DNA from: Paramicrosporidium saccamoebae KSL3 | Lineage: Eukaryota > Fungi > Cryptomycota | DNA: 32,000 bases | Reading direction: 5' to 3' | Assembly: GCA_002794465.1 (NCBI GenBank) | Contig: MTSL01000206.1 | Coordinates: forward strand, 1-32,000 | Shown: positions 1,742 through 26,867 of the stretch, in pieces | Layout: each line of letters opens with the position of its first letter | Numbering within the stretch: position 1 is the first letter of the stretch | The notes under the pieces: generated by a model | What the model saw: only the letters and a program-made list of their open reading frames with translations | What the model was told of the DNA's origin: nothing | The model's database searches: none | Made by a program: the position numbers and the translations under genes

Positions 1742-3185
1742 TCAGGAAGTGTTTTTATTTTTCTGAGCTCGATACCAAGCGAGTAATAGCTCGTGTGAAG
1801 ATTTGTACTCTAGCCGACGAAGATGCAGATTGCATGGATTCCCAACAGTTGGGATCACCCAGTCATACTGCAGCCAAGGCGCATCTAGAAAGTCGACCAG
1901 CTCAGAGAAACTACTATGCTCTGAATAGGGTAGCGACATTACTGCAATGGCATCCTTCCTTTTAACAGGCTGGCCATGGGCATCCTTTCGGATGTGCGGG
2001 TGAAAAGATAGTTCACTACCTCTGGATGAAAAGGTCCATCCTGTTGGTCTGATGGCTAGGACATGCGTAAAACGGGGCCAAACCGAGTCTAGAATGTTTC
2101 CAATGTTCTAAATACGCATGAGAATCAGATACTTTGCATACTATGGCGTCGAGATCCATCATTGAAACGAGATGGACCAGCGCCTCGTCAGACTCTGCTG
2201 TTATCCTCTCTGACAATTCTGGCCATTCCAGACACTTGAACACTGTCCTTTTCCTAGCAGTGCAGAGAATCTTGGTATCCAACATCTTTGCCACTGCCAA
2301 GGCCACCTTTTCTTTCCCAATAAGATAGGATCCTACCAGAAAAAGTCTCCTGATCGGAATAAATGCACGTTGATCATTCTTGATGATGCGCGAGACGTGA
2401 TTGCAGCAGTTTGAGATGGCTTCGTGTTGACTGGGAAATGAATACTGAGGATCACAATAGGTCGTGTCGAGGTATACTGCGTCGAATCGGGGGATTTGAA
2501 GTTCTTGCCAAACCGGGTCATTATTCAGCTGCCGTGATCCTCGAAAATCTCCAGTGTGCAACAAATGACGGCAGGAGCCATCGTCATTCTTTATGCGGAA
2601 TACAAACATGACTGAGCCAGGACAGTGAAAGGCATCAACTAGGAATACATCCAGCAGCCCCACAGTGGTCCATGCACCAAGGGGAATCTTGCGAATCTTG
2701 TGCTCATCCACCTGCAAAACGGCAACCACCAAATTCCCGGTAGCTTCGGAGCAAACCACGCTGCCCCAGTCAAATGTCTTGCCAAGGCCGCGGTAGTGGT
2801 CCGAATGGAAATGACTATTATTTCATCAATTATACATTGAGCTCATGTACCTGAGAAAGTAAAAATCACATCCGTCCACTCGCACATCAAACGAGTCTAC
2901 CACGTACGGTGTGCCTAAGACTCTTTTCTGTGCAGGTACCACTCCACCGTGCGGGAGACGCGGTAGACGAGACTCGGAGCCGTTAACCGTAGGCTTGTCA
3001 GGAATTCCAAAAAAGGTAGACAAGGTTGATTGCTTCTGGACTCCAGGCGGGGAGCTCTTAGGAGACGGCACGCCGTCTATACATGCATTTACATGAATCT
3101 CGGCCGACGACTATAGCATGAAAAATTTCATTGTCTAAAATACAGGGTCAGCTGACAATGGGCGACAGCAAATAGGACATTCCAT
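1742..3185 (-). CDS. SNM1: SNM1/PSO2 (DCLRE1A-like) DNA interstrand cross-link repair nuclease, about 446 aa; introns 3111-3143, 2815-2850, 2108-2141
   Basis: Splicing restores a UBZ-type finger (MECPIC...IHVNACID), the MBL motif FLSHFHSDHY, DAxHCPGS, LHTGDFR, YLDTTY, GSYLIGKEK, and beta-CASP motifs IRPTGW and PYSEHSSF. All three introns are GTA...TAG and keep frame. Confidence 0.93.
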
Positions 3186-3519: not shown

Positions 3520-4127
3520 TTATTCAGTCTCTACAGAGGTAGTATTGATTTTGAATTGAATGTGGTTTGGACTAACAAGGAGCATCTCAATAACCTTGCT
3601 CACCATACTCCGAACAAACGATTCCACCTTTCCCACATTCTTCAAACCTAGAACGTTAGCAAACCCGAATCTAGCTTACTATGTCGGTTAGGATCGCCAA
3701 TCTCAGAGTCGAAATCAAAAGTAAAGTCGCTTTCCTTTTCTTTCCTCAACGACAGAGTCACACTCGTGCCTATATAGTCCAACAGCAGCACACCGTCTAT
3801 ATCCACTTGCTTGATGCATATCCTGACGGGCAAGACGGCAAACCGCGGTGCGGGGTGGTTGATAACTAAATCGCCGCGTAAGAGGGCATTTATGGGCGAG
3901 GAGTATCGAATCCTGAGCACTAGTCTCGTGTCTTCTGGGGTGGGTCCGTCCAGTATATCTTCCAGCGCAAGCTCGGGCGGGGTCTCACCGAGCCAGAGGT
4001 CTTGTATCGTGAGCTGGTCTACCAATCCGTGCGTTGGTATGTTCTTCAAATGCTCGTTAAGCGTATCCTGCAGAGTATCTAGGCTGGACGGCTTTCTGAT
4101 TTCCTCCCAATTCACCTCAAAGGACAT
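3520..4127 (-). CDS. MDM12: ERMES subunit Mdm12 (SMP domain), 191 aa; intron 3648-3679
   Basis: N-terminus MSFEVNWEEI, LWLGETPPEL, LVINHPAPRFAVLPV. A 32-nt intron (GTAAGC...GCTAAC...TAG) joins to SEIGDPNRHSLKNVGKVESFV, the conserved Mdm12 C-terminal motif. Confidence 0.88.
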
Positions 4128-4410
4128 TACGTTTGCGAAATTTACAATAACGATTCGCTATTGGAGTCCCTGGTTCGCAATTACGTGGAATGATTATTTG
4201 GACATTCGACCAAACATGAAGAGAAAGGTCAGAGGCGAGTTTATAAAAGGCAGTTGACAATAGATAGCTCCCTGTAGCGCGTTTAAATTGACACTATGGT
4301 CGTACTCTTATCATGCAACAAATGCACCATCTCGACGTTTTATTCGTCTTCCCTTAAGCCAACTTTGCGACCTGCAACTGTCGCCAAGTAAAGCGTCAAT
4401 TTATAGACTG

Positions 4411-5886
4411 CTAGTTGGAGGGCGACAATCTCGTCCCTGCCAATAATTCCATATTACGACCTGATACTTTTTTGCCCTTCCACGCCTCTAAACCTTCTCC
4501 ACCATACGAAATGAGCGGCGAAATTTCCACCTCGCCCTCAACAATGGCGCCGGCCTGAATCAGCCACTTGCCATGCAAGTCGAGGACTGCCTTTCGGCAG
4601 TGGTCAGGTGAATCGCAATCCGCACCAGCGGCATTTTTAAGTGGTGAGAATTCCTGATCGCGATCTCCTTGATAGACGACCGGCTTCTCTCCATGTTCAA
4701 AGACGTCAAAGATGAATTTTTCGAGCTTCATCCCCATCAGAGCAGTCTTTATCGGGTTACCAGCTTCGTCGATTGATGGAATCTTCTTTCTCGCCAAATG
4801 TGTGGGAAGGGACAAGTTGGCGCATTTCTCCAAGAATGGAATGGAAAAGAAATGGTTTGCAATGTTTGCGTGGTTGAACACTAGATTCCCGTCACGATCC
4901 GTCTTCTCGGCCATGTTGGCGTCAAATTCACTATATTCTGCGACCGCCATCTTGCCGTCTTGTCGGCGACAGAACACTCCGACGCTCTCTGACGGATCCG
5001 TTTTTTTAATCGTTTTAGCCGCGCAATCAGTTCCCTTCTCAATACATGCACCAATGAAAGTGGGATCGCCGATCCGAACCAATGCATTGTCCACGCAATA
5101 CATGTGGACAAATTCGACGCCGGCCGTCTTTAACTCTGCAAGGACACCCTCCTCCTTTAACGCGGCATAGATGCCCCCATTGCCATTGGGCGACAGGGCC
5201 AATGATTCTTTGTCTTTCAAGATAATCTTTCCCTCTTCTGTCAACGCGGGGAGCTCGCCCTGCTTGAAAAACTTGACGCCACCCTCTCCGAGACCAAAGA
5301 AATTGTTCGTCGTGAAAAAATCCACCGTTGCCTTGTGTGTCGCCGCTGAAGTCATAATGTACCATAGGAGCTCCTTTGCATCAGCCAACTTGATTAGTTT
5401 ACGCAGCCGCAATGCCTGCATCTCAAAGAGTGACATTTGCGAGGGTAGGCCGATATTGAAGCATCCCTTTGGGGCGGATGAGCCAAGACGAGTGCCCTGA
5501 CCACCCGCCAGTGTGACTACGGCAACTTTGCCCCTTTTGATTGCCGAGAGACCTATAGTCCAAAATTTCCCATGATCATCGTCATGGATTACATCGGTCG
5601 CTTGAAGCGGTGCGGGCTGCAACCTGCTGGTCATCTCCTTTGCAGCATCCTTGGAGGCCTTAAAGTCTTTCATGACCTGCTCAATGTCAAAGGTCTCTAA
5701 CTGTGCGAGGAACCTTGCCAGCTCGCTGCTATCAAGGCTGTCAATCCATCTGAAAATGTGCTCTTGCCCCGCCTTTACATATTTGTCACGCAAGGCTGAC
5801 GGGATTTCGCTAGTGTGGTTGTTGGTGTGGTTGCTGGTTTGGGTGGATATTACCATGCTGGATGCCGGTGGCGCATGCAACGGCAT
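4411..5886 (-). CDS. UAP1: UDP-N-acetylglucosamine pyrophosphorylase, 491 aa
   Basis: LAGGQGTRLGSSAPKG, SPNGNGG, YCVDN, EYSE, NIANHFF, KLEKFIFDVF, EFSPLKN, EISPLISYGGEGL; single ORF with ATG. Confidence 0.96.
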   Translation of the reverse strand: MPLHAPPASSMVISTQTSNHTNNHTSEIPSALRDKYVKAGQEHIFRWIDSLDSSELARFLAQLETFDIEQVMKDFKASKDAAKEMTSRLQPAPLQATDVIHDDDHGKFWTIGLSAIKRGKVAVVTLAGGQGTRLGSSAPKGCFNIGLPSQMSLFEMQALRLRKLIKLADAKELLWYIMTSAATHKATVDFFTTNNFFGLGEGGVKFFKQGELPALTEEGKIILKDKESLALSPNGNGGIYAALKEEGVLAELKTAGVEFVHMYCVDNALVRIGDPTFIGACIEKGTDCAAKTIKKTDPSESVGVFCRRQDGKMAVAEYSEFDANMAEKTDRDGNLVFNHANIANHFFSIPFLEKCANLSLPTHLARKKIPSIDEAGNPIKTALMGMKLEKFIFDVFEHGEKPVVYQGDRDQEFSPLKNAAGADCDSPDHCRKAVLDLHGKWLIQAGAIVEGEVEISPLISYGGEGLEAWKGKKVSGRNMELLAGTRLSPSN

Positions 5887-6119: not shown

Positions 6120-8599
6120 ATGGAGGACGGACCAAAGCACATTGATGCCATGAACCCGGCCGATTTGCACGAGAATATTGATTCGCCGCACTTTCGTCCA
6201 GCTTTTGGGGACCTCACAAACAATGAAAATTTCGCCCTCGAGTCACCCGGACAGTTGGCAAAGAAGAGAAAGTCACTTGGCCGGCGGGTTTCGTTTGCAG
6301 CAAAGGCCAAAGTGCGGTACTATTTGTAAAGTTTGACTAATTGCAGATTCATTGACAAGGACTCGGATGCGGAGGCTGCTGAATTTGCAGAAGAGGGCGA
6401 CAATAATGTCTTTTTGGTTGAAAAAACACCAGTCCGGGAGCCAAACGTTCCGAAAGAGTCGCCAAAGTCCGACATGGACATGTCGGTTGTCTCCAATGAC
6501 AGCATCGAGGTCGAGTTGAAGGACCCCCACTCTTCCTTCTCCTCCTACGATTCAGCCGAGGAGGTGGAGAATCGTCCCAGTTTTTTGTTGGACGACATGG
6601 AAATGACCAAATGTGTGGGCGGGATCATTGCACCCAGCCAAAACACGGAAGACACGACGATGGATTTGACATCTTGCATTGGCGGCATTCTGAATAACAT
6701 TCCCAACTATGCCATGTCGCCCTCTTCAGTGGACACGATGGAATTGACAAATGTCGTTGGAGGCATTCTGGGGCCTTTGAAATCTAAAGGAGCAGATTCG
6801 CCAACGGCTCCAAAAGTGGAAGATGTTGTAGAAGACATGGCCGCAGTCATCAAGACTGCCAGAATTGCTCCAGATAGTCCGTCGCCCTTCCTAGCGACCC
6901 CCACCAGACTAAACTCGCCAATGCACAGCGAAGTCTCTTTCATTGGTGATGTAGATCAACCTGGAAGTCTTGGATTTGGGGCCAGTCCGGCACCTCCTCG
7001 AACTGAGGCCGCTGAAGATATGGATTTGACAACTGAGCTATTCAACAAGTACATTGATACCAGTCGATTCAATGCCCTGACTATGCGTCCCACAGAAGAA
7101 TCGCCTCCTGCCAAACAATTGTACACGCCCCAAAGTCCTGCCATAAATCTTGTCCCTCCAACCTCTCAAACCGAGAGTCCCACCGTGACAATCATGCTTC
7201 CGAGGGCATCTCTAAAGGACTTTTTAAACGAGACAGGCGTCCGCTTCCTGGACAATATTTCGTCTCTGAATCGTCGTGAGACTACCGGTCGTCCTCGTGA
7301 ATCTGAAGTTGTCAGTGCGGCCAAGCAGCTTTTTATTGATGGTGGACTATCTTTGGAAGGGGATGCGCTCGATGATGCCTGTGTTCGTCTGGCCGGAATG
7401 CTGACTGAAATTCGAGACGATTTGCAAAAGCAAGAGGAGCAGTTTAACCATTCCCCACCGTTGGCTTTCCTTCAATATCGTGATCCTGAGGAACGTTCAA
7501 ACGTTATCAGCAAGCTCAAAACACTCAAGAGTATTGCTCGTCTGTATGCCAAACAGGCGTGGTACGAATGGCGTAATCCTGTCCACTCGGCTCTGAATCG
7601 CGATTTGGAAAAGAATGTCCAAGTTGTCTCTGAACGCGTCGCCAAGCTGATTGCCCTGGGACAGAAACTGGATGAGACTATCACCAACCTCTCTCCCCTT
7701 GTAGATGGAATCACTAGTGAGGCCGAGGTTATGCGCGAGAGATGCGATGCCATGGCTACTGATGATGTCGAGCAGGTACAGCAACTCGAGCAACTTGTCA
7801 CTGCTCAAACTGAAAAGCTGTCGACAATCGATTCGGAAATGTCCGCTTTGGTCAGTCGGGAGGAAGAGCTTCGTGCGAGCATTGATCGTGCCTTGTCCAA
7901 ACGGAAGGAACTCCAGCAAAACGTTGCCATGATTAAGCAACAGATTGATTCGGTGCCTGAAACGTCGCCCATTATCTTGGAAGAGCTTCGTAGTTCGTTC
8001 AAGCTGCTTCAGGGCGCAACCGGTTGGAGATTATTGAAAATTGCTGCCACCGAGTTGCACTTGCAATTCACACGCGCCGAACTTGGCGTCGCCTTCAAGC
8101 TTTCCCTTGACTCGACAGGGAAATCTATAGTGTCATCCGTGGCCTTTGATGCCACTCAGGTAAAGTCAAGGATACTGAAGCATGTTTCCCGCATCCTGCG
8201 TGTCCCTACTGATCTTACCCTGTCACAGGTAACACATTCATCAACCTCATATTTTAGTGTTTAATGTATGTTGGACAAAGACTAGACAGGCTGTCTCAGA
8301 TCGACAAACAGCTTCATGTCGTCGGAGTGCAGTGTACCGTTGCCATCCCTGATCTCATCGGTCCTGATACTTGCGTGATCCCCATTGCCCTGGGTTTCTA
8401 TCATCAATCGTCTCGCGCTAAATTTGATCTCCTCCTAACTTTGGATGCCGAACGACTCTCATATTCGCAATTTGTCTATTTCTATGGCGCCGTGAAAGAG
8501 CACCATGTAATGGATATTGTGCAGCTCACTCTAATGCACAAATACCAGCCGATCCGGCGCCTGGTGGCCGCAATCCAGGAGGCCATCGATAATCAATAG
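6120..8599 (+). CDS. SPC105: Kinetochore scaffold Spc105/Spc7/KNL1, about 806 aa; introns 6317-6346 and 8229-8257
   Basis: RRVSF PP1-docking motif (6285-6296). MELT-type repeats MEMT/MDLT/MELT followed by xxxGGI at 6597, 6660, 6738, and MDLT at 7020. ASLKDFLNETGVRF, WYEWR, coiled coil, C-terminal globular region. Two introns join ORFs 6105, 6333 and 8264 in frame. Confidence 0.88.
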
Positions 8600-8939
8600 T
8601 CAAAAATAGCGATTTTATCTTTTTGATGTCGGACCATGAATGTAAAGCCACGAAGCTGGCTACTGTCAGCTATTTATTTGAGAGTGCATTATAATGTTTC
8701 AGATTCGTCCATGCCCTTATGCGGTTGCAGCTATTTGGAAAGATGTAGTGCTAATCTAGTGCAGATTTAGGAATCCCTAATCCGAAAACTTTAGATCGAA
8801 CAGCCTTCTGGTGAATCCCGATAACATATGTCACCGCTTGGCGTTACTTTTAAATGTTCTATCTATGGAATCCCAACATTTGGGGGCCGAATGTCGTCAA
8901 TAGAATGATACTACCACTAATGACACCAAGTTCTCTTTG

Positions 8940-9062
8940 ATGGCATACTTTGCGTTCAGATTCACCAAAGAAAGCGCATCTGTTTCAATATTGATACAGT
9001 TTTCAACTACGCAACTGATCGTCCTCTTCCTGCTGATGGTATGGGTTGTAGCCAGTCTATTC
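8940..9062 (+). pseudogene. Family A copy A0, truncated after TM1
   Basis: MAYFAFRFTKES...LIQF...LFLLMVWVVASLF aligns to MTYLTFRFSKGS...LVQF...LLLLMAWNVGNLF, then similarity stops. The family promoter motif is present upstream (8851) but the TATA reads TATCTATG. Confidence 0.7.
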
Positions 9063-9174: not shown

Positions 9175-10440
9175 TTATTCCGTAATTTCGGTAGTATTAG
9201 GTTCCGGCATGTCGACAACGCACTGATTTCCACTGGGACCTGCAGTACTGGGCCCTGCTTGACTTGATGGGGGCGACGCGGCGTCTTCAGTCGTTGGAGG
9301 AGGAGGTGGTGGTGGGATTATCGAGCTCACCGGGCGTATCGCGTTCAGATTACACACCTCGCAATGGCTCCGGGCCCTGGGCGCCCTCTTCCTCCAGCCG
9401 TACCAGGTGGTCCTCCAGATCGGCGTCTCTTTGGAACAGCGATATCCGCAGAGCTCGCACTCCGTGGCGTCACCTGGAACATACCAAGTATCGAGCTTGA
9501 GCTCGTCTTCTGTGCACAACCTAGAGGGCTCCACGTTTCCACACTTTGCCTTAAATTTAGGCATCTCTCGGTTGATCCAGGTGGCGTCGACATCAGCATC
9601 GGCATTAGTGGTGGTGGTACCGGATACGGCGGCGGTCTTGGTAGTGTCGGTGCCATGTTGTTCAAGAAGCTTCTGGCACAGTGCCAGTGCAACAGCTTTG
9701 TCCTTGCCCTTGACCAGCCGATAAAACGCGTCCAAAAAGCAGTCCTGCCGGATGGCCGCATTGAAGCTCTTCTCTTTCCACATCAAGCGGATGATTTCGG
9801 CCAAATCACCACCCTCTGCGGCACGGAAGAGTTTCAACAGCAATGCCTGTCGGACGAACCATTCTCGACATTCGGCTACATCGGAGGGGTCCGCAAAGAT
9901 TAACAATGCGGCCTTTTCTCTGAAGCTCTTGTCTTCATCGAATGAGAGGCCCAGCAGACACTCAGTCTTGAATTCCTCAAAACTGAGCCAACTCCCGTTA
10001 CTCGCCACCGTTTCATACGTCTGTTTCAAAGACGGAAACGAAAGTAACGGGATATTGGATGCACTGATGCGTCCATACTGCTTGATCGCAGTGGATACGG
10101 CCTGGGTAAAGGTCATCCCATCCTTGAGGGCACCGTCAGGATAAAAGTTCTGGTAATATCTTCCAACGATTCTCCTTCGGCGCCACTCCCACGCAAGGCG
10201 ACCAAGCAGCACGGTTATAGGTATGATGGCCAAACCTGCCGCAACAAGATACGGCCACCACGGATGAAACCTTCCTAGAGCCGCCATGCTACCACTGAAA
10301 ACCGCTAAGATGCCAACTGTCGCCTCTGCATAGGCGAAACAGCGGTAACGACCCCGAAACTTCTTTAATCTGCGCATTGTCGCAATCAGCCCGAAGGCAA
10401 GGGCGAAGACAGCCCCAAGGACAGCGGGTGTAACGTCCAT
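9175..10440 (-). CDS. Family B copy B1: unknown protein of 421 aa with 3 N-terminal TM segments, soluble core, CxxC...HCxxC finger and Pro-rich tail
   Basis: Long intact ORF; first ATG at 10440 lies about 45 nt below a TATAAATT box; three hydrophobic segments followed by RRRR; paralogs at 3-417, 832-1400 and about 15960-16760. Confidence 0.8.
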   Translation of the reverse strand: MDVTPAVLGAVFALAFGLIATMRRLKKFRGRYRCFAYAEATVGILAVFSGSMAALGRFHPWWPYLVAAGLAIIPITVLLGRLAWEWRRRRIVGRYYQNFYPDGALKDGMTFTQAVSTAIKQYGRISASNIPLLSFPSLKQTYETVASNGSWLSFEEFKTECLLGLSFDEDKSFREKAALLIFADPSDVAECREWFVRQALLLKLFRAAEGGDLAEIIRLMWKEKSFNAAIRQDCFLDAFYRLVKGKDKAVALALCQKLLEQHGTDTTKTAAVSGTTTTNADADVDATWINREMPKFKAKCGNVEPSRLCTEDELKLDTWYVPGDATECELCGYRCSKETPIWRTTWYGWRKRAPRARSHCEVCNLNAIRPVSSIIPPPPPPPTTEDAASPPSSQAGPSTAGPSGNQCVVDMPEPNTTEITE

Positions 10441-10484: not shown

Positions 10485-10676
10485 AATTTATAGGCTGACT
10501 GGTTCTCGGAAAACACCACAAATTTCAATGGACATGGTTGACAGGTTAAATGTTAGTCGTTGATTGGTCAATAACGAGTTAGCGATACTGATAATTGATG
10601 TGATTGGACAATACCGAGCCGACGGTACCGGCAGCAAATATGATTGGCCAAAGTAAAGACAATGGTGATTGGCTGG
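10485..10676 (-). promoter_or_regulatory. B1 promoter: TATA box plus repeated CCAAT boxes
   Basis: TATAAATT at 10485-10492; TGATTGGNCAA at 10561, 10601 and 10641 (CCAATCA on the minus strand), a fourth TGATTGG at 10666. The same TATA context (16809-16816) and one box (16932) are kept upstream of B2. Confidence 0.6.
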
Positions 10677-10984
10677 ATCGTGTGGCTGTACATGTCAAGA
10701 ATAGTCATCGTACACTAAGGGCAGTGAGACTAAAGGGCCTGCCAGACTTGCCGCTGTTGTTGTAGCTCTTACGGGAAGAAGCGTACCTGTAATGAGCTGT
10801 AGTAAAACTTCCCAAGGTGGTGTATTCCTGACTTTATCTATTGGCTTATATTTTGTGTTTGTGAAACAGTTGTAATTCTAAATGCTCCCTATCAATAAAG
10901 ATTTGCAAGCTATTGTCTAATGAGTGCTATGTGCATTTGCTGAAGAATCCGGGGTGGAACACTCCAATCAGTTACTGTTGTCTC

Positions 10985-11030
10985 TAAATGTTCTATAAAT
11001 AGTCATTCGACACTTGGGGTCGAAACATCT
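10985..11030 (+). promoter_or_regulatory. Conserved family A promoter motif (AAATGTTCTATAAATAG...GGGGYCGAAAYATC)
   Basis: TATA-type core 61-85 nt upstream of the ATG in five copies (10994, 12110, 14175, 17269, 18493), plus a mutated version in the motif at 8851 upstream of A0. Confidence 0.65.
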
Positions 11031-11072
11031 ATCAAATAGAACACTGTCCCTGATGCCTCTGATATCCTTCTG

Positions 11073-11888
11073 ATGACATACTTGACATTCAGATTCTCCA
11101 AGGGTAGCGTGTTCGGTCCGAGATTGGTGCAGTTCCTCAGCTATGTAACTGATGCAGTCCTCCTCTTGCTGATGGCATGGAATGTCGGCAACCTATTCTA
11201 TCCGTTCTGGAGTACGGTCACACTCGTCTCCCTCTGGATCGGACTTGTTGTGCATCCATTCATCTTCTGGCTCGTCAAACGATTCCGTCTTCGCTCTGTA
11301 ATCGTCCCCAAATTCAAACTCATTGGGCCGGAACCGAAAGGTTATTACGAGCGCCTGAAATATCTCGGGTTCTTATACTCCGTCTGGGAGCGTTCCGATC
11401 ACTTGTGTCTGTCGTACTACTACTCACACGACGGATTCTTTTGCTCGAGGAAACGAGGTGCCTCTCGCTCATTTTATATGCACTGTAACACATTCCTGGG
11501 TTGGCTCACTGTCATACTCACAGATTTCATTCCGATAGCTGTGCTGATTGGATTCCTCTGTGCTGGCTATTTTCTTGGCATTGGCACTCTCATCTTCTTT
11601 TCCATGGGTCTCATTTTGGCATTCCAGCTGAAGGCTCTCTATTTCCGCTTTTATGAAGCCAGCCACGAGTGGAAAGACGAGATGGTTCTAGGTGAAAAGG
11701 TCCGCACTACCAAACATCTTGGATTGATGGCCTGCATACTGGAAGGACCGGATGGTGAGCTGTTCCTGGGGCTGGCCAAGTCTGTTGAATATGATCATTG
11801 TGTGAGATATTATTGGTTAACACCGCCGAGGGGGGGTGAATGCGAATGTTGTCCCTCTGCTTCACCTCTGCCTCGATTTAAAACATGA
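11073..11888 (+). CDS. Family A copy A1: unknown 4-TM protein, 271 aa
   Basis: Intact ORF, upstream TATA, AATAAA at 11926; conserved with three other intact paralogs; differences from A2 in the first 18 codons are all synonymous. Confidence 0.85.
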   Translation: MTYLTFRFSKGSVFGPRLVQFLSYVTDAVLLLLMAWNVGNLFYPFWSTVTLVSLWIGLVVHPFIFWLVKRFRLRSVIVPKFKLIGPEPKGYYERLKYLGFLYSVWERSDHLCLSYYYSHDGFFCSRKRGASRSFYMHCNTFLGWLTVILTDFIPIAVLIGFLCAGYFLGIGTLIFFSMGLILAFQLKALYFRFYEASHEWKDEMVLGEKVRTTKHLGLMACILEGPDGELFLGLAKSVEYDHCVRYYWLTPPRGGECECCPSASPLPRFKT

Positions 11889-12186
11889 TTTACCATAGGG
11901 AGCGCTTTCAGTATTAATACCCTTCAATAAATGCAGCATGCAAAGAGCCCAGTTTATTACAACGGAGAACCCGAATCAATACCAGTCGCCCAACCGCTGT
12001 TCTATAAAAAGCTGATTTTGGATACTAACAAACCTCATTCCACCTTGATTTTAACTATCGGAGTAGGCACGAATATGCCTCGACTAACAGGCATCCTTTT
12101 GTCGTTACCTATAAATAGTCATTCGACACTTGGGGTCGAAGCATCTATCAAATGGAACACTCCCTGATGCCCCCGATATCCTTCTG

Positions 12187-13008
12187 ATGACATATTTAAC
12201 ATTCAGATTCTCCAAGGGCAGTGTGTTCGGTCCAAGATTGGTGCAGTTCCTCAGCTATGTAACTGATGCAGTCCTCCTCTTGCTGATGGCATGGAATGTC
12301 GGCAACCTATTCTATCCGTTCTGGAGTACGGTCACACTCGTCTCCCTCTGGATCGGACTTGTTGTGCATCCATTCATCTTCTGGCTCGTCGAACGATTCC
12401 GTCTCCGCTCCGTCATCGTCCCCAAATTCAAACTCATTGGGCCGGAACCGAAAGGCTATTCTGAGCGCCTAAAGTATCTCGGGTTCTTATACTCCGTCTG
12501 GAAACTTTCCGATTCCTTGTGTCTGTCGTACTACTACGTAGAAGACGGATTCCTTTGCCCGGGGAAACGAGCTGCCTCTCGTGCATTTTATATGGATTGT
12601 AACCCGTTTCTGGGTTGGCTCATCGTCATACTCACAGATGCCATTCCGATAGCTGTGTTGATTGGATTCCTCTGTGCGGGCTATTTTCTTGGCATTGGCA
12701 CCCTAATCTTCTTTTCCATGGGCCTCATTTTGGCATTCCAGATGAAGGCTCTCTATTTCCGCTTTTATGAAGCCAGCCAAGAATGGGAAGACGAGATGGT
12801 CTTGGGTGAAAAGGTCCGCACTACCAAACATCTTGGATTGATGGCCTGCACACTGGAAGGATCGGATGGTGAGCTGTTCCTGAGTCTGGCCAAGTCTGTT
12901 GAATATGATCATTGTGTGAGATATTATTGGCTGACACCAGCAGGTGGATGCAAATACGAATGTGGATGTTGCCCTTCTGCTTCACCTCTGTCTCGATTTA
13001 AAGGATGA
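12187..13008 (+). CDS. Family A copy A2, 273 aa
   Basis: ATG at 12187 is homologous to the A1 start (the track's 12130 start is TTG); close tandem paralog of A1; AATAAA at 13046. Confidence 0.85.
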   Translation: MTYLTFRFSKGSVFGPRLVQFLSYVTDAVLLLLMAWNVGNLFYPFWSTVTLVSLWIGLVVHPFIFWLVERFRLRSVIVPKFKLIGPEPKGYSERLKYLGFLYSVWKLSDSLCLSYYYVEDGFLCPGKRAASRAFYMDCNPFLGWLIVILTDAIPIAVLIGFLCAGYFLGIGTLIFFSMGLILAFQMKALYFRFYEASQEWEDEMVLGEKVRTTKHLGLMACTLEGSDGELFLSLAKSVEYDHCVRYYWLTPAGGCKYECGCCPSASPLSRFKG

Positions 13009-13587
13009 TTTGTCGCGGAGAGTGCTTTCAATATCCCTATCATTTAATAAATACGATATGTATAGATTTAGTGTACTACAGCGGAAAATCTGAATTAATA
13101 TCAGTTATTTTACGCCTTTATATCGAAAAATTAAAGTCTCGGATACTAGCAAGCCTTATTCCGCCTCACTTTCGACTACTGAAACAGGCACAAGGCCAGT
13201 TTCGAGCACCCAGATTGGCGTTCCAAGAGCTGTTGCGTAATCTCAACGCATAAAGAGTTTTACAAAGGTGTACCATCCAAGCAACCTTTGAAATCACAAA
13301 TGACACACTAACAATCCTGAAATAGTAAAGATACAGGTCTCACTGCCTTTAATTAGCCGCTCCAAATATGTCACCTACAAACTAGCGTATCTTCTTCAAA
13401 GAGCATGACAATCAATCTACTATATCACATGGCCACGGTGCTAATGTGTAAAGTAGTGGAATGTTTATTATCAAATATCTTTTCTCCGGGATGGTGCCAA
13501 TGTGTCCAGACATTGAAGAGCCGACACTTCCGTTCCATAATTGCACAATTATCCAGCACCCAACTAGCCATTTCACTGCTTCACATA

Positions 13588-13820
13588 GTGGCCGTAATCT
13601 AGGAGGCCACTGATAACCGATGGCCAATAATAGCAATTTTATCTTTTTGATGTCGGACCATGAGCGGAAAGCCAAGAGACTAGCTATTGCCAGCTACTTA
13701 TTTGGGGGTGCTGCTCTTATTGGTACCGCTTGTACAAGCCGTGTGACTCGTAGGGTTTGGCTTTAGCGCATTCTCAGTATTCCGAATGATGCGGGCTAAT
13801 CATGCTGGTGACCCGATAAA
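13588..13820 (+). repeat. Duplicate of 8563-8825: last 12 codons of SPC105 plus downstream spacer
   Basis: GTGGCCGTAATCTAGGAGGCCACTGATAACC...TTTTATCTTTTTGATGTCGGACCATGA matches GTGGCCGCAATCCAGGAGGCCATCGATAATC...TTTTATCTTTTTGATGTCGGACCATGA. A distal anchor CTGGTGA(AT)CCCGATAA is also shared. Confidence 0.85.
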
Positions 13821-14258
13821 GTGCGTGTTCTGGCAGCGAGTCCGTGTCATTTCAAATGCACTTTCCATCTCTCTTCTAACACTTCCCTTGGTGCTTCCCT
13901 ACTTTTCAAATTCATTCATACTCTTCCGCACCACAACTAAAATTTAATTTCTAATCCGCCCTAATGAGCTGCTTACTTGGGACTAGCCGTCTCTAACGAC
14001 GACGCCATTCAACAGGCCGCCGACTCTTCGTCAATCGTGCGAATCAATAAAGCAATTGTAACGAGAATTTCATAGTTGGCCAGTCTTTGGATATCCACAG
14101 AACAGTATATCGTGCGCCTCTTGGACAGTTGGAGCCGGGGAACCTCGGCCAATCGAAACTAGCTTACCATGTTTTATTAATAGCCATCAAGCATTTTGGT
14201 CAGGGGAACATTTTTATTGGATGCCTCATCCTTGCTAGCCGTTCTGGCATCTCCACCG

Positions 14259-15080
14259 ATGACATACTTGAAATTCAAATCCTCCAAGAGTAGCCGGGTT
14301 ATTCCGGTACTTGTTCAGTGTCTCAGTGTGATCGCTGATACGCTCCTGCTCTTGCTCATGGGCTGGAACATTGTCAATCTGTTCTATCCTCTTTTTAGCT
14401 GGATCGCCATTACCCCCCTCTGGGTCGGTCTTATCATGCATTCGTACATCTTCTGGATCGTTGACCGCTTCAGACTCCGATCCTTTGTAGCTGCCAAACT
14501 CCGCCTCACTGACCAAACCACGTCGGAACAAGCCAGCCGCTTGAAACATTTGGGATTTCTGTATTCGGTATGGGGAAAGTCCGACTCTCTTGCCTTGGGA
14601 TATTACGACTGCTTAGATAGAGTTTACTGTCAAAAGAAACGTATTGCCATTCTACATTGTGAAAGCGACTATAACAAGTGGATAGGCTGGTTCGTTGTTT
14701 TGGTCACCGATGCCCTGCCGTTTGCTGTGCTTATGTCGTTGCTTTGTGCCGGCTACTTTCTTGGTATTGGCTCTGTCATATCCTTTGCAATGGGGCATAT
14801 CCTGGCTCTCCAAATACAGACTCTCCATTTTAGCATCCGGAAATCACATTATTACTGGAAAGAGGAAATGTTCTTTGGTGATAAAATGTGCAAGAGCAAA
14901 TCTCTTGGATGGATGACGTGCGTTTTAGAGGGACCCGACAGTGAGCTGTTCCTGACACTAATCAAAGTGGCCGAGTATGATCACTACGAAAGACAGCACT
15001 GGTTCAACTTGGCAAATTGGAAGGTGTGCGCATGCTGTACCTCAAATTCATGTGCTGCTCCCTCTGGGGAGAGTGTATGA
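14259..15080 (+). CDS. Family A copy A3, 273 aa
   Basis: MTYLKFKSSK start homologous to the other copies; keeps RLKHLGFLYSVW, VTDA, CVLEGPDSELFL, YDH and the CxCC tail; AATAAA at 15123. Confidence 0.85.
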   Translation: MTYLKFKSSKSSRVIPVLVQCLSVIADTLLLLLMGWNIVNLFYPLFSWIAITPLWVGLIMHSYIFWIVDRFRLRSFVAAKLRLTDQTTSEQASRLKHLGFLYSVWGKSDSLALGYYDCLDRVYCQKKRIAILHCESDYNKWIGWFVVLVTDALPFAVLMSLLCAGYFLGIGSVISFAMGHILALQIQTLHFSIRKSHYYWKEEMFFGDKMCKSKSLGWMTCVLEGPDSELFLTLIKVAEYDHYERQHWFNLANWKVCACCTSNSCAAPSGESV

Positions 15081-15959
15081 TGTATCATAGATCGATCCCC
15101 TACTGTACCGTCAATACCTTGAAATAAAGATGACTTTGTGTGTAATAGCGAACTTCTCGAGTTTCGGGTGCGGAGACACCTCAGCCGACACGGCCAAGAC
15201 GGTTAGAGGTGAGATCCCGCAATCTCTCTCGCAAAAAGCCCTAATATAACGCCGGCGATACCAATGTAGTATGCTGAATTTCCGAATCGGCACATTCGTT
15301 TCGGTAGTTCTAATAAACTAATCTTTTCGCTTTTAAAATGAGCATTCGAAATCCTTGCCGAGAGAGGCTTCTATTAGCCGAACGTTGTTGCCTTGGAGAA
15401 TACTTCCAAGACTGGTAGCGCCTCGACTCTCTACTGGCATTACCCTGCTATTACGACGATACTGAACATTACCACTATTTGGCCTCTAGTTAAGAAAATA
15501 CCGGATTATCCAAAACACTTTGTAATGGCGAAAATTATCAAATCCATTCTTGCAGCCGACTGCTCGGATATTACATTCATTGAACGATATTCCTAAGCAG
15601 CCCGAACGAGGATAAACTATTCATGCGCTAGACTTTTCCAGGCATCTAGAGCCTTGAAGCGACTGTAAATGCCTGAAAAGATCCAAGGCAAGCCTATACG
15701 CTTGAATTCCAATGTCTGCCGTAGTTGCTATTGTCGATTTGTAATCATTACTCGGCCGAGTGCTGGCTACAGGATCCATGGCTACATCCCGGGTGTTTCT
15801 GTGTTTTTGTAACCACGAAAGCACAGCATTCTCTTGACTGACTGCTTCTCGCGTTTCCAAACAAGACGGTCCAATTTAGTTCTGACGCTTGCAGAGTGCA
15901 CTGCGAGCAGCCCGAATATTAGAGCCGATGCACTCGGCACACTGGATGTGGTAGAAGGA

Positions 15960-16760
15960 TCTTCGAGTCCAGGAGCAAGATCGGAGGATTGAGCTCATAG
16001 GGCGTACGCATTTAGGTTACAAACCTCACAGTGGTTCCGGGCTTTGGGTACCCTTCGTCTCCAGCCATGCCAAGTGGTCCTCCAGCCCGGCGTCGCTTTT
16101 GGGCGCTGATAGCTACAAAGCTGACACTCTGTGGCGCTCCCTGGGGCAAACCAAGTACCAAGCTCGATCTCATCATCCGAACGCAGCACAAAAGCGTCAA
16201 TGTTCCCGCACTTTGCCTTGTGCTTGCCCTCGACCAGCCGATAGAATGCGTCCAAAAAGCAGTCCTGCCGGATGGTCGCATTGAAGCTCTTCTCTTTCCA
16301 CATCAAGCGGGTGATGTCGGCCAAATCACCACCCTCTATGGCACGGAAGAGTTTCAGCAGCACTGCCTGCTGGACGAACCATTCTCGACATTCGGCTACA
16401 TCGGAGGGGTCCGCAAAGATTAACAATGCGGGCTTTTCTCTGAAGCTCTTGTCTTCATCGAATGACAAGCCCAGCAGACACTCAGTTTTGAACTCCTCAA
16501 AACTGAGCCAAAGTCCGTTACTCGCCACCGTTTCAAAGACGGAAACGAAAGTAACGGGATGTTGGATGCGCTAATGCGTCCATACTGCTTAATAGCAGTG
16601 GATACGGCCTGGGTAAAGGTCATCCCATCCTTGAGGTCACCGTTTGGGTAAAACTTTTAGTAGTATTTACCAATGGCTATCCTCCGGCCATAAAGTACCA
16701 TCGATGACGGCCAGAATGCATACCAGCGGTGTTATCCTCTAAACTTTTTGGGGCTGCGAA
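15960..16760 (-). pseudogene. Family B copy B2, pseudogene
   Basis: Near-identical to B1 in the core, but with a premature TAA (16657-16659), a 13-nt deletion near 16530, a 147-nt in-frame deletion near 16220, a 1-nt deletion near 16007, and an eroded TM region. Confidence 0.88.
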
Positions 16761-17049
16761 GGAGAATACGGCCGGCTAGGTTGGTCAGTTACCAGGGAGG
16801 TAAAAGGGAATTTATAGGCTGGCTGGTTTCTACAATAAACGCCACAAATTCCAGTAATATTATTGGGCGATTCAATCGGCTAGATCCCTAACAATAACTG
16901 GATAATCTGTGTGAGAGGGCAAACGTATCTGTGATTGGTCAAATATAGTGGTGGCGACAGCCTTAATAGTCGTGGGATGTGCTTTACGACACAGGGTACG
17001 GGGAGACGGCAGGGTGGCTCGGTCATGAGCTTGTGGTTTGACTCTTCTG

Positions 17050-18530
17050 CTGTGAGTGAGTACAGAGCTTCCCGTTGAAGCAAAGTTCAATGCAAAGGAA
17101 TTACTTTGCCTGTTTAATGCATGATTTCATCATGAGAGTGAAAAGGAAAGCAATTATTAGTCTTCATTTTCAATCAGCTCTTTAATAGTGACAACTGGAT
17201 ATTCAATGTGCCTTCCGGACTGCCTGGGGTAGGGTACTCCAACCAGGTAACGTTGCTTCTAAATGTTCTATAAATAGCCATCCAACAAGTGGGGCCGAAA
17301 TATCATCTATTGGATCAGACATTGCTACTGACAACTCCGATCCCCTGCTGATAATGTACTTGACATTTAGACCCACCAAGGGAAGCATACTTATTCCCAA
17401 ACTGGTGCAGTTTCTTAGCTATTCAGCCGATGCACTTCTCGCATTGCTGATGGCATGGAGTATTGTCCATCTGTTCTATCCCATTTGGAGCTGGGCAACC
17501 TTTGCTTCTCTCTGGATCGGGATAGTCGTGCATCCATTCATCTTCTGGCTCATCATACGCTTCAAAATTCGTGCTTTCGTGATTTCCAGATATCCCTCCA
17601 TCGATCAGTACGCCTCTCCACCTGCGTTCCGCCTGAGACATCTTGGATTCTTCTTCTCAGTGTGGGAGTATCCTGATTCCTTGGTTCTAGCAGAGTACCA
17701 CGGACACGATATCCTATTCTGTTTGAAACAACAATATCCCCGCTTTTCATTTTCAACACAATACAAAAAGTGGGTGGGATGGCTCGTCGCATTATCCACT
17801 GATGCCCTTCTGGTGGCCTTGCTAGGTGGGCTATTGAGTGCTTGCTACTTTTACGGCATCGGCACAATTGTGTTCCTTGCAATGGGCGTCATCTTGGCTC
17901 TCCAAGTGAGGAGTCTCCGTTTCCGCTTCAGCAAGTCCCATTATCAGTGGAGGGATGAAATGTTCTTTGCTGATAAGATGTGCAAGACCAAGCCTCTTGG
18001 CTTGCTGACATGCATCCTGGAGGGACCTGATGGCGAGCTGTTCCTGACTTCCCCCGCGGTGGTATGGTTTGACCATTATAGAAGAAAGCATTGGATCTTA
18101 AGGGAAGCGGAGTTCTTATGTAAGTGCTGCCACCCGGCTCCCCTCCCCGGTCCACCTGAAAATGCTGTATGATGATTGATTACCCGTTTATTAGCTATTG
18201 CAGTGGACATTCAATAAAAAGCTCTACTAGGTATCTACCTCATGAGCAATGCTGCTGAGAGGCAAAGGTTCTTTAGTTGTGAGTCAATATGAAATTTCCC
18301 GTTGAGGCAAAGTCCCATGCAAGGAAATTAATTTGCCTGCTCGGTACATGAGCTCACCATGAGAGTAAAAGGGAAAGTAATTATTAGTCTTTATTTTCAA
18401 TCAGCTCTTTAATGGTCGCAACTGGCCATTCAATGTGCTTTCTGGACTGCCTGGGATAGGGCACTCTCGGTTCATTCTGCCCCTAGATGTTCTATAAGTA
18501 TTCATCCAACAGGTGGGCCGAAACATCACC
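17050..18530 (+). repeat. Duplicated upstream spacer of A4 (about 17050-17300) and A5 (about 18277-18530)
   Basis: Shared tracts TTCCCGTTGARGCAAAGT, CATGAGAGT, ATTATTAGTCTTYATTTTCAATCAGCTCTTTAAT and GGACTGCCTGGG define a tandem unit of about 1.2 kb. Confidence 0.85.
17354..18172 (+). CDS. Family A copy A4, 272 aa
   Basis: Intact ORF MYLTFRPTKGS...RLRHLGFFFSVW...STDA...CILEGPDGELFL...CKCC; TATA at 17269; AATAAA at 18213. Confidence 0.85.
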   Translation: MYLTFRPTKGSILIPKLVQFLSYSADALLALLMAWSIVHLFYPIWSWATFASLWIGIVVHPFIFWLIIRFKIRAFVISRYPSIDQYASPPAFRLRHLGFFFSVWEYPDSLVLAEYHGHDILFCLKQQYPRFSFSTQYKKWVGWLVALSTDALLVALLGGLLSACYFYGIGTIVFLAMGVILALQVRSLRFRFSKSHYQWRDEMFFADKMCKTKPLGLLTCILEGPDGELFLTSPAVVWFDHYRRKHWILREAEFLCKCCHPAPLPGPPENAV

Positions 18531-18553
18531 CATCGGAGCATATTCTCTTACTA

Positions 18554-19108
18554 ATGATGTACTCGACGTTCAGACCCACACAGGGAAGTGTGCTTATTCC
18601 AAAACTGGTGCAGTTTCTCAGTTATGCAGCCGATCAAATTCTCTTTTTACTGATGATATGAAATCTTATCAATCTGTTCCCTCCCATTTGGAGCTAGGCC
18701 ACTTTTGCTTCTCTCTGGATCGGATTAGTCGCGCATCCGTTCATTTTCTGGATCATCGAACACTTCAAGATTCGTGTTTTCGTAGTCACCAGACACCCCT
18801 CCATTGATCAGTATGCCTCTCCACCTACGTTTCGCCTGAGGCATCTTGGATTTCTCTACTCAGTGTGGGAGTATTCCGATTCCCTGACCCTGGCGTACTA
18901 TCACGAATACGATGTCGTCTTTTGCTTGAAACAACAATATCTCCCCCTCATGTTCTCAACGCAATATAGAAAGTGGGTGTGATAGCTCTTCTCGTTATCC
19001 ACCGATGCTATTCTGACATGTTTAATAATTGAATTGCTCGGCGCTTGCTACTTTCACGGCATCGGCACAATTGTGTTCTTTGCGATGGGTCCCATCTCGG
19101 CATTCCAG
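18554..19108 (+). pseudogene. Family A copy A5, pseudogene
   Basis: Colinear with A4 but with in-frame stops at 18659, 18695, 18980 and 18983; similarity ends after TM4 (AFQ); TATA reads TATAAGTA. Confidence 0.9.
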
Positions 19109-19508
19109 TCTGACAGAAACATGGGCGCCGCAATGGGCTTTTCCGCATCTTAGAGTCACCCGACAAACCTACGACACCAGCAACGACAGAGGAGAAATCG
19201 TTTGCGCCAAAGGAACAACGAGCATTGACTCAAAGTACCATAAGAAGCAGGACACGAGAGTAAATCTCAGTCCAACTATTACTTGTCACATGTACTCTTG
19301 GGAAGCACCAATGCCGAGTCCTACTGGACAATGGCGCTAGTCAAGCTTCGTGTTTTACAATTAGCGCCAGCACGCGAAATCGACTCGGCAGCCAAAATAC
19401 ATTTAGCATTTAGTACGTGCGATTCTGTGCTATCACTGGTACTGGCCAGGCCCTCTCACTCGACAATGAGTAAAAATCAATAATCCTTTAAATTTAATTA
19501 CTTTATCT

Positions 19509-21089
19509 ATGACTAGCAGTCCAACAGACTCCAACGTAACCGTGCACTCTGATAGCCGTGTGCGTTGTAAGATGCCCCCCACGGGCAGTCGAATCAGCTG
19601 GGTGTCACAATTAGATATTGATGCCACGCCGGCATGCGTCCGGAAGACCTCCATCATCTGCACTATTGGACCCAAAACGAACAACGTGGATTCTTTAATT
19701 GAGCTGCGAAAGGCAGGAATGAATATTGTGCGGATGAATCTGTCGCACGGGTCGCATGAGTACCATGGATCAGTGGTGGAGAATGTACGACGGTCATTTG
19801 AAGTATTCCCAGGGAGACCGGTGGCGCTTGCATTGGACACAAAAGGACCAGAGATCCGGTCTGGCGAGCTGGAAGGCGGGGTTTGCTTGATCCCAAAAGA
19901 TCATGTATTCATACTGACTACTGATGAGAAATATCGTCTGTGCGGCGGTCTAGAGCGGGTCTTTGTGGATTATCCACAGATTGGTGAGACTCTGGAGCCG
20001 GGCAAGCTAGTATACGTTGACGACGGCAATTTGCAGCTGGAAGTACTCGAGTCTCTGGGGAGCCAAGGAGTCAAGGTTCGAGCCTTGAACTCGCATAAAT
20101 TGCTGAATCGAAAAGGAGTCAACTTGCCGTACACAAAGGTCCTGATCCCCTCAGTGTCGGAGAAGGACAAGCAGGATTTGCGGTTTGCGGTTGAGCAAAA
20201 GATGGACATGGTCTTTGCCTCCTTTATCCGTAAGCCCGAAGACATTCACGAAATACGAAAAATACTGGGAGACAGTAAGATTCTCGTGATTGCCAAGATT
20301 GAAAACCACGAGGGAGTGAAAAACTTTGACGCCATCCTGGAAGAGGCAGACGGAATCATGGTAGCCCGTGGCGATCTCGGGATTGAGATTCCTCCTCAAA
20401 AGGTCTTTGTTGCGCAAAAGATGATGATTGCACGGGCCAATCTGAAGGGTAAGCCAGCGATTTGTGCCACGCAAATGCTCGAATCCATGACGCAGAACCC
20501 ACGACCCACGCGAGCAGAGGCATCCGATGTGGCCAACGCCGTTCTCGATGGCGCAGATTGTGTAATGTTGTCGGCTGAGACGGCGAGTGGAAATTATCCC
20601 GTCGAGACAGTACGCACAATGGCCAGCATCTGTGCCGAGGCTGAATCGACCATTGCCTATTTGCCGCTGTTTGAAGAGCTACGAGCTCTCATTGGCTGTG
20701 CCGAGAATGTTACTGAGACTATTGCCTGTTCCGCTGTTAATGCAGCATCGGAGACATATGTCCAGGCAATCATTGTGCTCACCACCACTGGCGGCACTGC
20801 TCGTCAGGTTGCCAAATTCCGACCACAGGTGCCAATCATTACAGTGACCCGCGAAGATTTGACCGCTCGACAAATCCATCTTCATCGCGGCTGTTATCCG
20901 CTGGTCTGGAAAGAATCACATGATCCGCAGAACGAATGGCAGGGCGACGTCGATGGACGTTTCCGATGGGCCATTTCCGAGGCCAAACGGATTAATCTGC
21001 TCAAAACGGGCGACCATGTGGTGCTCATCCAAGGAGCCCGAGCAGGACATGGCCATACCAACACTTTACGCATCCTCCAAGTCGAATAA
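19509..21089 (+). CDS. PYK1: Pyruvate kinase, 526 aa
   Basis: IICTIGPK, RMNLSHG, ALDTKGPEIR, VDDG, KGVNLP, DMVFASFIR, IAKIEN, GIMVARGDLGIEIP, ATQMLESM, PTRAEASDVANAVLDGADCVMLSAETASG. Confidence 0.98.
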   Translation: MTSSPTDSNVTVHSDSRVRCKMPPTGSRISWVSQLDIDATPACVRKTSIICTIGPKTNNVDSLIELRKAGMNIVRMNLSHGSHEYHGSVVENVRRSFEVFPGRPVALALDTKGPEIRSGELEGGVCLIPKDHVFILTTDEKYRLCGGLERVFVDYPQIGETLEPGKLVYVDDGNLQLEVLESLGSQGVKVRALNSHKLLNRKGVNLPYTKVLIPSVSEKDKQDLRFAVEQKMDMVFASFIRKPEDIHEIRKILGDSKILVIAKIENHEGVKNFDAILEEADGIMVARGDLGIEIPPQKVFVAQKMMIARANLKGKPAICATQMLESMTQNPRPTRAEASDVANAVLDGADCVMLSAETASGNYPVETVRTMASICAEAESTIAYLPLFEELRALIGCAENVTETIACSAVNAASETYVQAIIVLTTTGGTARQVAKFRPQVPIITVTREDLTARQIHLHRGCYPLVWKESHDPQNEWQGDVDGRFRWAISEAKRINLLKTGDHVVLIQGARAGHGHTNTLRILQVE

Positions 21090-22176: not shown

Positions 22177-22483
22177 CATGGCCAACTGACGTGAGCATGA
22201 TTTTCTAATAGTTTTTTTGCAGTATAAACAGTCTTGCCACATCATTATCCCAACTAGACACAACCGGATCAATTATCAGACATGGCCGGCTGACGTGCTC
22301 ATGCTTTTCTACTAGCTCTTTGCAATATAAACAGTCGCCACATCATTGTCCCGACTAGATAAAATTCGATCGTTTATCAGACGTGATCGGCTGACTTGAG
22401 CATAATTTTCTAATAGTTTTTGCAGTATAAACAGTCTCGCCATATGATCGTTCCGACTAGATACAATTTGGTTATTTATCAGA
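22177..22483. repeat. Three tandem ~102-bp units between the KIF15 stop and the eIF4E start
   Basis: CTGAC anchors at 22186, 22290 and 22391; each unit has TTTTCTA.TAG...TGCA.TATAAACAGTC...CC.ACTAGA...TTATCAGA. Confidence 0.92.
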
Positions 22484-26630: not shown

Positions 26631-26867
26631 CCCCGTCCCTTTGTCGCGTAGTGGGGATAATACCACGGCCCAGTTTAGGCGAGAAGAGACGAGGTGGGAC
26701 GAGAAGAGAATTTATTCAGTCGATCCAACGACCCATTTATAGTCTCACAAATAACATTATCCTTCATCGATTGTTCTGATTATCCCTTCTCCAAACTAGG
26801 GAACTATCCTCAAATACCCAACTAATCAGTCTTCTACGCCACACCCTTATACATAGATGTGCTAATA

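Follow-up and report, generated by a model that had tools for sequence, protein, structure and literature searches.

What occupies a ∼9-kb stretch of the Paramicrosporidium saccamoebae genome in which the deposited annotation records almost nothing? This fungus is an intranuclear parasite of Saccamoeba (PMC5701793), and the DNA analysed here, which we call the window, comprises positions 1 to 32,000 of contig MTSL01000206.1 from its genome assembly, GCA_002794465.1 (Quandt et al. 2017, PMC5701793). Between the gene for a membrane protein of a family that we term B (copy B1) and the gene for pyruvate kinase (window 10500–19500), the only deposited call is a 118 amino acid (aa) open reading frame (ORF) at 16067–16423 on the forward strand, antisense to a second B copy, B2. 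The same interval holds four intact copies (A1–A4) of another membrane protein family, family A, and none of the four is among the deposited gene calls of the contig. Our best explanation of the data as a whole, held with slightly less than even confidence, is that family A is an unannotated family of four-helix membrane proteins with both termini in the cytosol (N-in/C-in), laid out as two units, whose buried acidic residues may form a cation site. The sections below consider whether these ORFs are genes, how the protein is built, whether its two units share an origin and what the acidic residues may do.

Family A copies are genes

The intact copies have diverged under constraint. Pairwise ratios of nonsynonymous to synonymous substitution rates (dN/dS) among A1–A4 are 0.21–0.35, with dS ranging from 0.23 to ∼1.9; for A2 against A1 the ratio is 0.25. 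Because dN/dS lies in this range, the family A copies are real genes under purifying selection and not chance ORFs. Part of the array arose by tandem duplication of DNA: A1 and A2 are tandem duplicates with 88.6% identity across ∼1 kb, and A4 and the pseudogene A5 are tandem duplicates with 76% identity across ∼0.86 kb. One could argue instead that the ORFs are non-functional, either decaying repeats or chance ORFs, and are missing from the annotation for that reason; the absence of all A copies from the deposited gene calls would agree with this, as would the presence of a pseudogene and a further remnant within the array. Such a reading is barely credible, however, since it would have to accommodate four intact ORFs of equal length that keep their low dN/dS at dS values from 0.2 to 1.9, as well as invariant motifs common to the A copies and to relatives from other organisms that are 35–67% identical. 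On the strength of dN/dS and of this cross-species conservation we reject the view that family A is repeat DNA.

Architecture of the family A protein

Kyte-Doolittle windows delimit four hydrophobic segments in A1, at approximately residues 18–38, 50–68, 144–164 and 166–186. An AlphaFold2 model of A1, calculated from an 11-sequence alignment (predicted local distance difference test score (pLDDT) 74; predicted template modelling score (pTM) 0.64), places helices at residues 14–41, 48–81, 140–168 and 170–199. The four transmembrane (TM) segments are paired in two hairpins whose loops are short: residues 42–47 (6 residues) connect the first pair, versus a break of 1–2 residues at position 169 in the second. 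We assigned orientation by the positive-inside rule, using counts of lysine plus arginine, which are 3 in the N-terminus, 0 in loop 1–2, 14 in loop 2–3, 0 in loop 3–4 and 10 in the C-terminal tail. Because these residues are confined to the N-terminus, loop 2–3 and the C-terminal tail, the topology is predicted to be N-in/C-in, with every soluble part cytosolic. A preliminary description of this locus had proposed, from the shortness of the hairpin loops, that all soluble parts would face one side of the membrane, and the modelled loops and the basic-residue counts bear this out.

Each hairpin is followed by a small soluble module rich in beta strands. The model places strands at residues 94–98, 102–106 and 111–115 in the N-terminal unit and at residues 209–216, 220–224 and 230–234 in the C-terminal unit; the order of elements reads H-H-E-E-E, then H-H-(E)-E-E-E (H, helix; E, strand). 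Family A is confirmed to consist of two consecutive units, each made of a TM hairpin with a conserved acidic residue, a helical extension with many basic and aromatic side chains, and a three-strand beta module. The data also support a like orientation of both units in the membrane. When the N-terminal half of A1 was modelled alone, pLDDT fell to 48, and the soluble part scored below 50. Because this half fails to model on its own, a soluble domain shared by both units is probable: the beta strands of the two units, together with an N-terminal strand, probably pack as one cytosolic beta domain.

Conserved residues

The preliminary description had drawn attention to an aspartate in TM1 and another in TM3, and this observation has held up well. 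Both Kyte-Doolittle analysis and the AlphaFold model put the two residues within membrane segments, D27 at position 10 of the 21 residues of TM1 and D151 at position 8 of the 21 residues of TM3. Both belong to the first helix of their hairpin, where each is part of a [T/A]-D-A motif. As had been described, the four intact window copies and A5 retain both aspartates; across the family, the TM1 column holds aspartate in nine and glutamate in one of the ten sequences that cover it, and the TM3 column holds aspartate in 18 of 18.

Other positions are conserved across the family as well. Within the helices, G57, G169 and G179 are invariant and P154 is present in 16 of 18 sequences, while the conserved polar helix residues are S23, H61, T150 and Q185. 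G99 of the N-terminal beta module is likewise invariant. The most conserved motif of the family is a hairpin in the C-terminal beta module with the sequence C-I-L-E-G-P-D-G-E-L-F-L. A set of cysteine and histidine residues is also nearly invariant: C124 (17 of 17 sequences), C221 (19 of 19), H242 (18 of 19), C257 (18 of 19), C259 (19 of 19) and C260 (19 of 19). These six residues, which the joint beta domain would carry, may form a metal site, a candidate suggested by their conservation pattern; disulfides are less likely than a metal site because the set is on the reducing side of the membrane. Coordinates of all features are collected in Table 1.

Table 1. Positions of family A and family B features in the window; residue numbers within proteins refer to A1
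Feature	Position	Strand	Details
Family A copy A1	11073..11888	+	Complete ORF, 271 aa, stop codon included
TM1	11124..11186	+	Residues 18–38, LVQFLSYVTDAVLLLLMAWNV; Kyte-Doolittle, AlphaFold helix 14–41
Asp27 codon	11151..11153	+	TM1, near mid-membrane; retained in pseudogene A5
TM2	11220..11276	+	Residues 50–68; W55, G57 and W66 invariant; H61 in 9/13; followed by basic helical extension 69–81
N-unit beta module	11352..11417	+	Residues 94–115, RLKYLGFLYSVWERSDHLCLSY; three predicted strands
Cys/His codons	C124 11442–11444; C221 11733–11735; H242 11796–11798	+	In predicted cytosolic parts
TM3	11502..11564	+	Residues 144–164; motif T150-D151-A-I-P154
Asp151 codon	11523..11525	+	TM3; D in 18/18 sequences
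TM4	11568..11630	+	Residues 166–186; Gly-rich (G169, G171, G179); followed by helical extension 187–199
C-unit beta module	11697..11774	+	Residues 209–234; holds C-I-L-E-G-P-D-G-E-L-F-L
C-terminal CxCC motif	11841..11852	+	C257, C259, C260; AlphaFold pLDDT <50
Family A copy A2	12187..13008	+	273 aa, 90% identity to A1; tandem duplicate of ∼1 kb
Family A copy A3	14259..15080	+	273 aa, 49% identity to A1; convergent with B2
Family A copy A4	17354..18172	+	272 aa, 48% identity to A1
Family A pseudogene A5	18554..19108	+	Residues 1–185; four in-frame stops; both Asp retained
Family A remnant	8940..9062	+	Only the first 42 residues remain; Asp column missing; convergent with B1
Family B copy B1	9175..10440	-	421 aa from ATG; three N-terminal TM segments, soluble domain, Pro-rich tail
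Family B copy B2	15995..16692	-	Truncated; frame change near 16530; lacks the N-terminal TM part

Do the two units share an origin?

The preliminary description went further and presented the protein as an internal two-fold repeat, with TM1–2 aligning with TM3–4 and each soluble part with the other. The equal order and orientation of elements in the two halves stand; common descent of the halves is plausible from their sequences but unproven by standard statistics. In a weighted family profile, the proposed alignments are the best-scoring diagonals (offset 124 for TM1/TM3, 122 for TM2/TM4 and 118 for the soluble motif), yet they do not rise above chance by standard tests. A self-alignment of the halves, which that description had itself named as able to refute the repeat if non-significant, was non-significant by both Smith-Waterman and hhalign, and by its own measure the duplication is unproven.

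The standard tests count against a shared origin. Smith-Waterman comparison of the N-terminal with the C-terminal half of single sequences, scored against shuffles, gave z = 0.7, 0.7, −1.2 and 1.5 for the four copies. Comparison of the halves by hhalign, for which local, global and low-mact runs were set against nulls made by block permutation and by reversal, gave P = 0.045 with 11 sequences and P = 0.15 with 22, neither of which is significant, and the only match in both profiles is the soluble motif. Unit-against-unit hhalign gave P = 0.12; judged by block-permuted columns, the empirical p was 0.31 in local and 0.15 in global mode. Profile Smith-Waterman likewise gave p = 0.49 and 0.14 at usual settings, and reached p = 0.023 only under a lenient chaining score. 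Among permuted TM columns, the TM-hairpin diagonal does not stand out (p = 0.26–0.47). The more favorable results come from narrower comparisons: the soluble motif alone gave permutation p = 0.011–0.029, and a test for collinearity of three blocks gave p = 0.0065. Both are post hoc, with blocks picked once the proposed alignment had been seen. Among the best-conserved columns, seven form pairs at offset 118–119 (K96/K214, L98/L216, G99/G217, E106/E224, D109/D227, L111/L230 and L113/L232), and the three model strands of the N-terminal module are in register with residues 212–216, 220–224 and 230–234. In strings of secondary structure assigned by DSSP, however, a shift by one strand (offset ∼109) yields a register of almost equal quality, and because of this the secondary-structure agreement of the halves is non-specific.

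Two accounts of the resemblance must be compared. In one, there was no internal duplication: the halves look alike through the shared hydrophobicity of their helices and through a common beta-hairpin turn pattern (E-x-x-D, then L-x-L) that each acquired on its own, and the two aspartates are unrelated. The non-significant Smith-Waterman, hhalign and usual-setting profile results are what this account would lead one to expect, as is the ordinary score of the TM-hairpin diagonal, and the soluble parts do differ in the AlphaFold model, with additional strands at residues 121–138 in the N-terminal unit and an additional strand (203–206) and helix (235–249) in the C-terminal unit. It sits less easily with the collinearity, within 6 residues, of the best diagonals of three independent blocks (the post hoc p = 0.0065 above), with the emergence of the soluble motif as the single top hhalign match in both profile versions, and with the placement of an acidic residue at similar depth in the first helix of each hairpin, in a shared [T/A]-D-A motif. 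We consider independent resemblance a substantial possibility that nonetheless falls clearly short of even. Internal duplication is in our view the most likely origin of the two units, a judgment that we hold at about even confidence; the event would be ancient, with its sequence trace almost erased.

A possible cation site

Counted from the cytosolic end of their helices (TM1, TM3 and TM2, respectively), D27, D151 and H61 are 7–9 residues deep. At this similar depth, the two aspartates together with H61 would make a polar site for a cation or proton in the inner half of the membrane. We conjecture, tentatively, that family A may be a small oligomeric channel or transporter for cations (metal ions or protons), or a cation-sensing membrane subunit; on the sequence evidence this specific assignment is doubtful. 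Family A would probably act together with the co-inherited membrane protein of family B. Several results weigh against a cation site. H61 is present in just 9 of 13 sequences. Pfam, PDB profile, Foldseek and hhalign searches yielded neither homology nor a significant fold match that would link family A to any transporter or channel: the Pfam scan of all 22 family members, with E values up to 10, gave scattered single-member matches below the cut-off and nothing consistent; the PDB profile search matched no chain (best E = 0.58); and Foldseek with the full A1 model found no PDB structure at E ≤ 0.001.

The buried aspartates may alternatively be determinants of structure or assembly. They would then form hydrogen bonds within the helix bundle, for instance with H61 or T150, or with a polar partner that could be another A copy or B, and the protein would be a scaffold or regulatory subunit. 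The conserved polar neighbors in the helices (S23, H61, T150 and Q185) are consistent with such a role, and so are the Gly-rich TM4, which is typical of tight helix packing, and the conserved gene linkage with membrane protein B. Retention of two carboxylates in almost all members would, however, be unusual for a purely structural role, though possible. The TM segments of B1 moreover contain no Lys, Arg or His that could pair with a carboxylate, and only one Glu. Overall, we judge the structural account unlikely but worth keeping in view. The preliminary description had suggested that the intramembrane acidic residues might serve ion or solute conduction, or pairing with a partner within the membrane. 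Pairing in the form of a salt bridge between a family A aspartate and family B is not favored, and we have set it aside because the B1 TM segments have no basic residue.

Family A is an orphan family

A word-indexed search of 5.8 billion proteins returned 7 relatives of family A, and an exhaustive hidden Markov model search of 1.84 billion representatives returned 12 proteins, all of them family A members or fragments. Some 19 relatives exist. These protein searches did not return the window's own A proteins because A1–A4 are unannotated. The relatives lie on independent metagenome contigs of the Joint Genome Institute (JGI); those contigs that we looked up are short and come from samples 3300042203 and 3300042204, identifiers for which a literature search gave no result. 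A scan of metagenome DNA with the A2 alignment produced 79 pattern matches, among which no relative was confirmed. Pfam scans of six window proteins returned nothing consistent, and Foldseek with the A1 model against the viral structure database BFVD returned nothing. Family A is an orphan family, limited to P. saccamoebae and close environmental relatives.

Comparison with known membrane proteins

The AlphaFold model of A1 invites comparison with MscS-type mechanosensitive channels, in which a cytosolic beta domain comes after a pore helix. MscS, MSL10, MscK or YbiO account for 13 of the 14 top Foldseek matches in the PDB, the sole matches to recur in the fold search, though weak ones, and the best local fit is to MSL10 (8jwe_A; 69 columns, root-mean-square deviation 3.2 Å, Foldseek probability 0.89). 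Family A shares with MscS and MSL10 a membrane helix that runs into a cytosolic helical stretch and then into a small beta-strand domain. A remote relationship is nevertheless highly improbable. The Foldseek matches have E values of 0.2–1 and TM-scores of ∼0.2, none of the 22 members matches the Pfam MS_channel family, no sequence in the PDB matches, and hhalign against Escherichia coli MscS (a query identical to 6rld_A) gives P = 0.18 in the wrong domain. With the lone N-terminal half, the fold search found generic helical hairpins only and no MscS match, although at pLDDT 48 that model is unusable. A family A chain, unlike MscS, contains two such units together with conserved buried aspartates and the Cys/His set, and it lacks the MscS alpha-beta domain.

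The sole hhalign match to MscS pairs family residues 94–121 (RLKYLG-FLYSVWERSDHL) with MscS residues 224–256, in the alpha-beta domain. We reject an MscS relationship at the sequence level, given that P = 0.18 and that the match falls outside the beta domain suggested by Foldseek. The resemblance is at most an analogy.

In topology, family A resembles MotA, ExbB and TolQ, which are stator-type proton-channel subunits of bacterial systems. Like these, it has four TM segments, a predicted N-in/C-in topology with very little protein on the outer side, and cytoplasmic parts that comprise the C-terminal tail and a large segment linking TM2 to TM3; TM3 likewise holds a conserved Pro, and the protein probably works with a membrane partner that has its own gene. 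The likeness is one of topology only: the Pfam MotA_ExbB family (PF01618) has no match in family A. The cytoplasmic parts of MotA are helical, whereas those of family A are beta, and in the stator systems the essential aspartate belongs to the partner (MotB, ExbD or TolR) and not to the four-helix subunit.

Repetition of a two-helix unit with equal orientation in the membrane is also known from K2P (4TM/2P) potassium channels and from mitochondrial carriers. Parallel two-helix repeats of this kind have a pseudo-symmetry axis perpendicular to the membrane and one equivalent functional residue per repeat. The repeats of K2P channels and of mitochondrial carriers can be recognized from sequence. 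In K2P channels the pore loops are long and re-entrant, versus loops of 1–6 residues in family A, and mitochondrial carriers have three repeats and a Px[DE]xx[KR] signature. No homology of family A to either group was found in Pfam or PDB profile searches. Finally, cation diffusion facilitator (CDF) proteins and other metal transporters with Asp/His sites resemble family A in having intramembrane Asp and His ligands at one depth, together with a cytosolic domain that could bind metal. CDF proteins have six TM helices and a ferredoxin-like C-terminal domain, whereas family A has four TM segments and beta modules, and Pfam, PDB profile and Foldseek searches gave no sequence or fold match to CDF-type transporters. 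Family A is an orphan family with a familiar design principle, and each sequence-based test of membership in a known family was negative.

Family B and the A–B array

Family B is the recurring neighbor of family A. B1 carries a conserved ECxxC...HCxxCNxNA motif that resembles a zinc ribbon. Family B is an orphan as well: apart from itself, a protein search with it found a single JGI protein. The window shows the order A(+), B(−), A(+) twice, once with the remnant, B1 and A1 and once with A3, B2 and A4. This arrangement is also found on two independent metagenome contigs, one with A at 3–746, B at 2127–1099 and A at 2711–3136 (L002), and the other with A at 71–865, B at 2098–1379 and A at 3919–4491 (L003). 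Compared with the window copies, the proteins encoded on these contigs are 37–65% (A) and 27–47% (B) identical. Because the linkage has been kept across such divergence, it suggests functional coupling of A and B; it is also possible that the linkage reflects shared ancestry of the array.

B-like fragments occur at the start of the contig, at 6–221 and 811–1251, both on the + strand and so opposite to B1 and B2; one has an in-frame stop. Because such fragments lie at the very start of the contig, the assembly appears to break inside the A/B array, and further A and B copies may exist elsewhere.

Two stretches of non-coding DNA recur beside the A copies. One is a 124-bp segment with 82% identity between its occurrences at 8564–8687, upstream of the remnant, and at 13588–13711, upstream of A3; it could be the leftover of a duplication unit or a shared regulatory element. 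The other comprises the ∼110 bp upstream of A1 (10961–11072) and of A4 (17236–17353), which align inside a 66%-identical DNA match, while the two proteins are just 48% identical. These 5′ segments may be a conserved promoter or 5′ untranslated region.

It is tempting to speculate that A and B form a previously unrecognized two-gene membrane module specific to Paramicrosporidium-type intranuclear parasites, in which A would be a pseudo-symmetric four-helix subunit that binds or conducts cations and B its three-helix partner with the zinc-ribbon-like motif, and which might act at the host interface or persist as a selfish (poison-antidote-like) cassette. Such a module would undergo amplification and turnover in tandem arrays, here with pseudogenes and a contig end inside the array, as would be expected of such a cassette. 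As a whole we regard it as quite improbable.

Genome annotation and neighboring sequences

The P. saccamoebae genome was annotated by MAKER, with Augustus trained on Rhizopus oryzae and with a RepeatScout library (PMC5701793). Either the Augustus training or the RepeatScout library could be behind the omission of family A.

Beyond the array, the pyruvate kinase encoded at 19509–21089 has its closest named relative in Rozella allomycis (61%), and environmental sequences reach up to 81%. Two ORFs on the − strand, one for a kinesin motor (24090–25604, 504 aa) and, 88 bp downstream of it, one for a coiled coil (22472–24001, 509 aa), probably belong to a single kinesin gene that a short intron or a frame change interrupts. 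Just beyond the 3′ end of the coiled-coil ORF lies a tandem repeat with a 101-bp unit (22186–22483; 2.9 copies, 78% matches). A 121-aa ORF (26414–26779, + strand) begins with two copies of MFQKDG(N/D)HIWTS, which are encoded by a 39-bp tandem repeat at 26409–26503. Positions 1401–1644 and 26636–26851 form a 244-bp inverted match with 71% identity that has the look of a dispersed repeat.

Biological implications

The finding of family A has no bearing on any long-standing question; of greatest concrete use are the overlooked gene family itself and the conserved A–B cassette. The ∼9-kb hole in the annotation of a published genome hides a conserved multi-copy family, which affects comparisons of gene content among reduced parasites. 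The lineage that carries these genes, Rozellomycota, stands at the base of Microsporidia, and hardly anything is known of its parasite-specific membrane proteins. Should the internal duplication be true, family A would offer a compact case of a membrane protein with parallel pseudo-two-fold symmetry, in which each repeat buries a single carboxylate. The conserved linkage of A and B provides the hypothesis of a two-component membrane system, one that can be put to the test.

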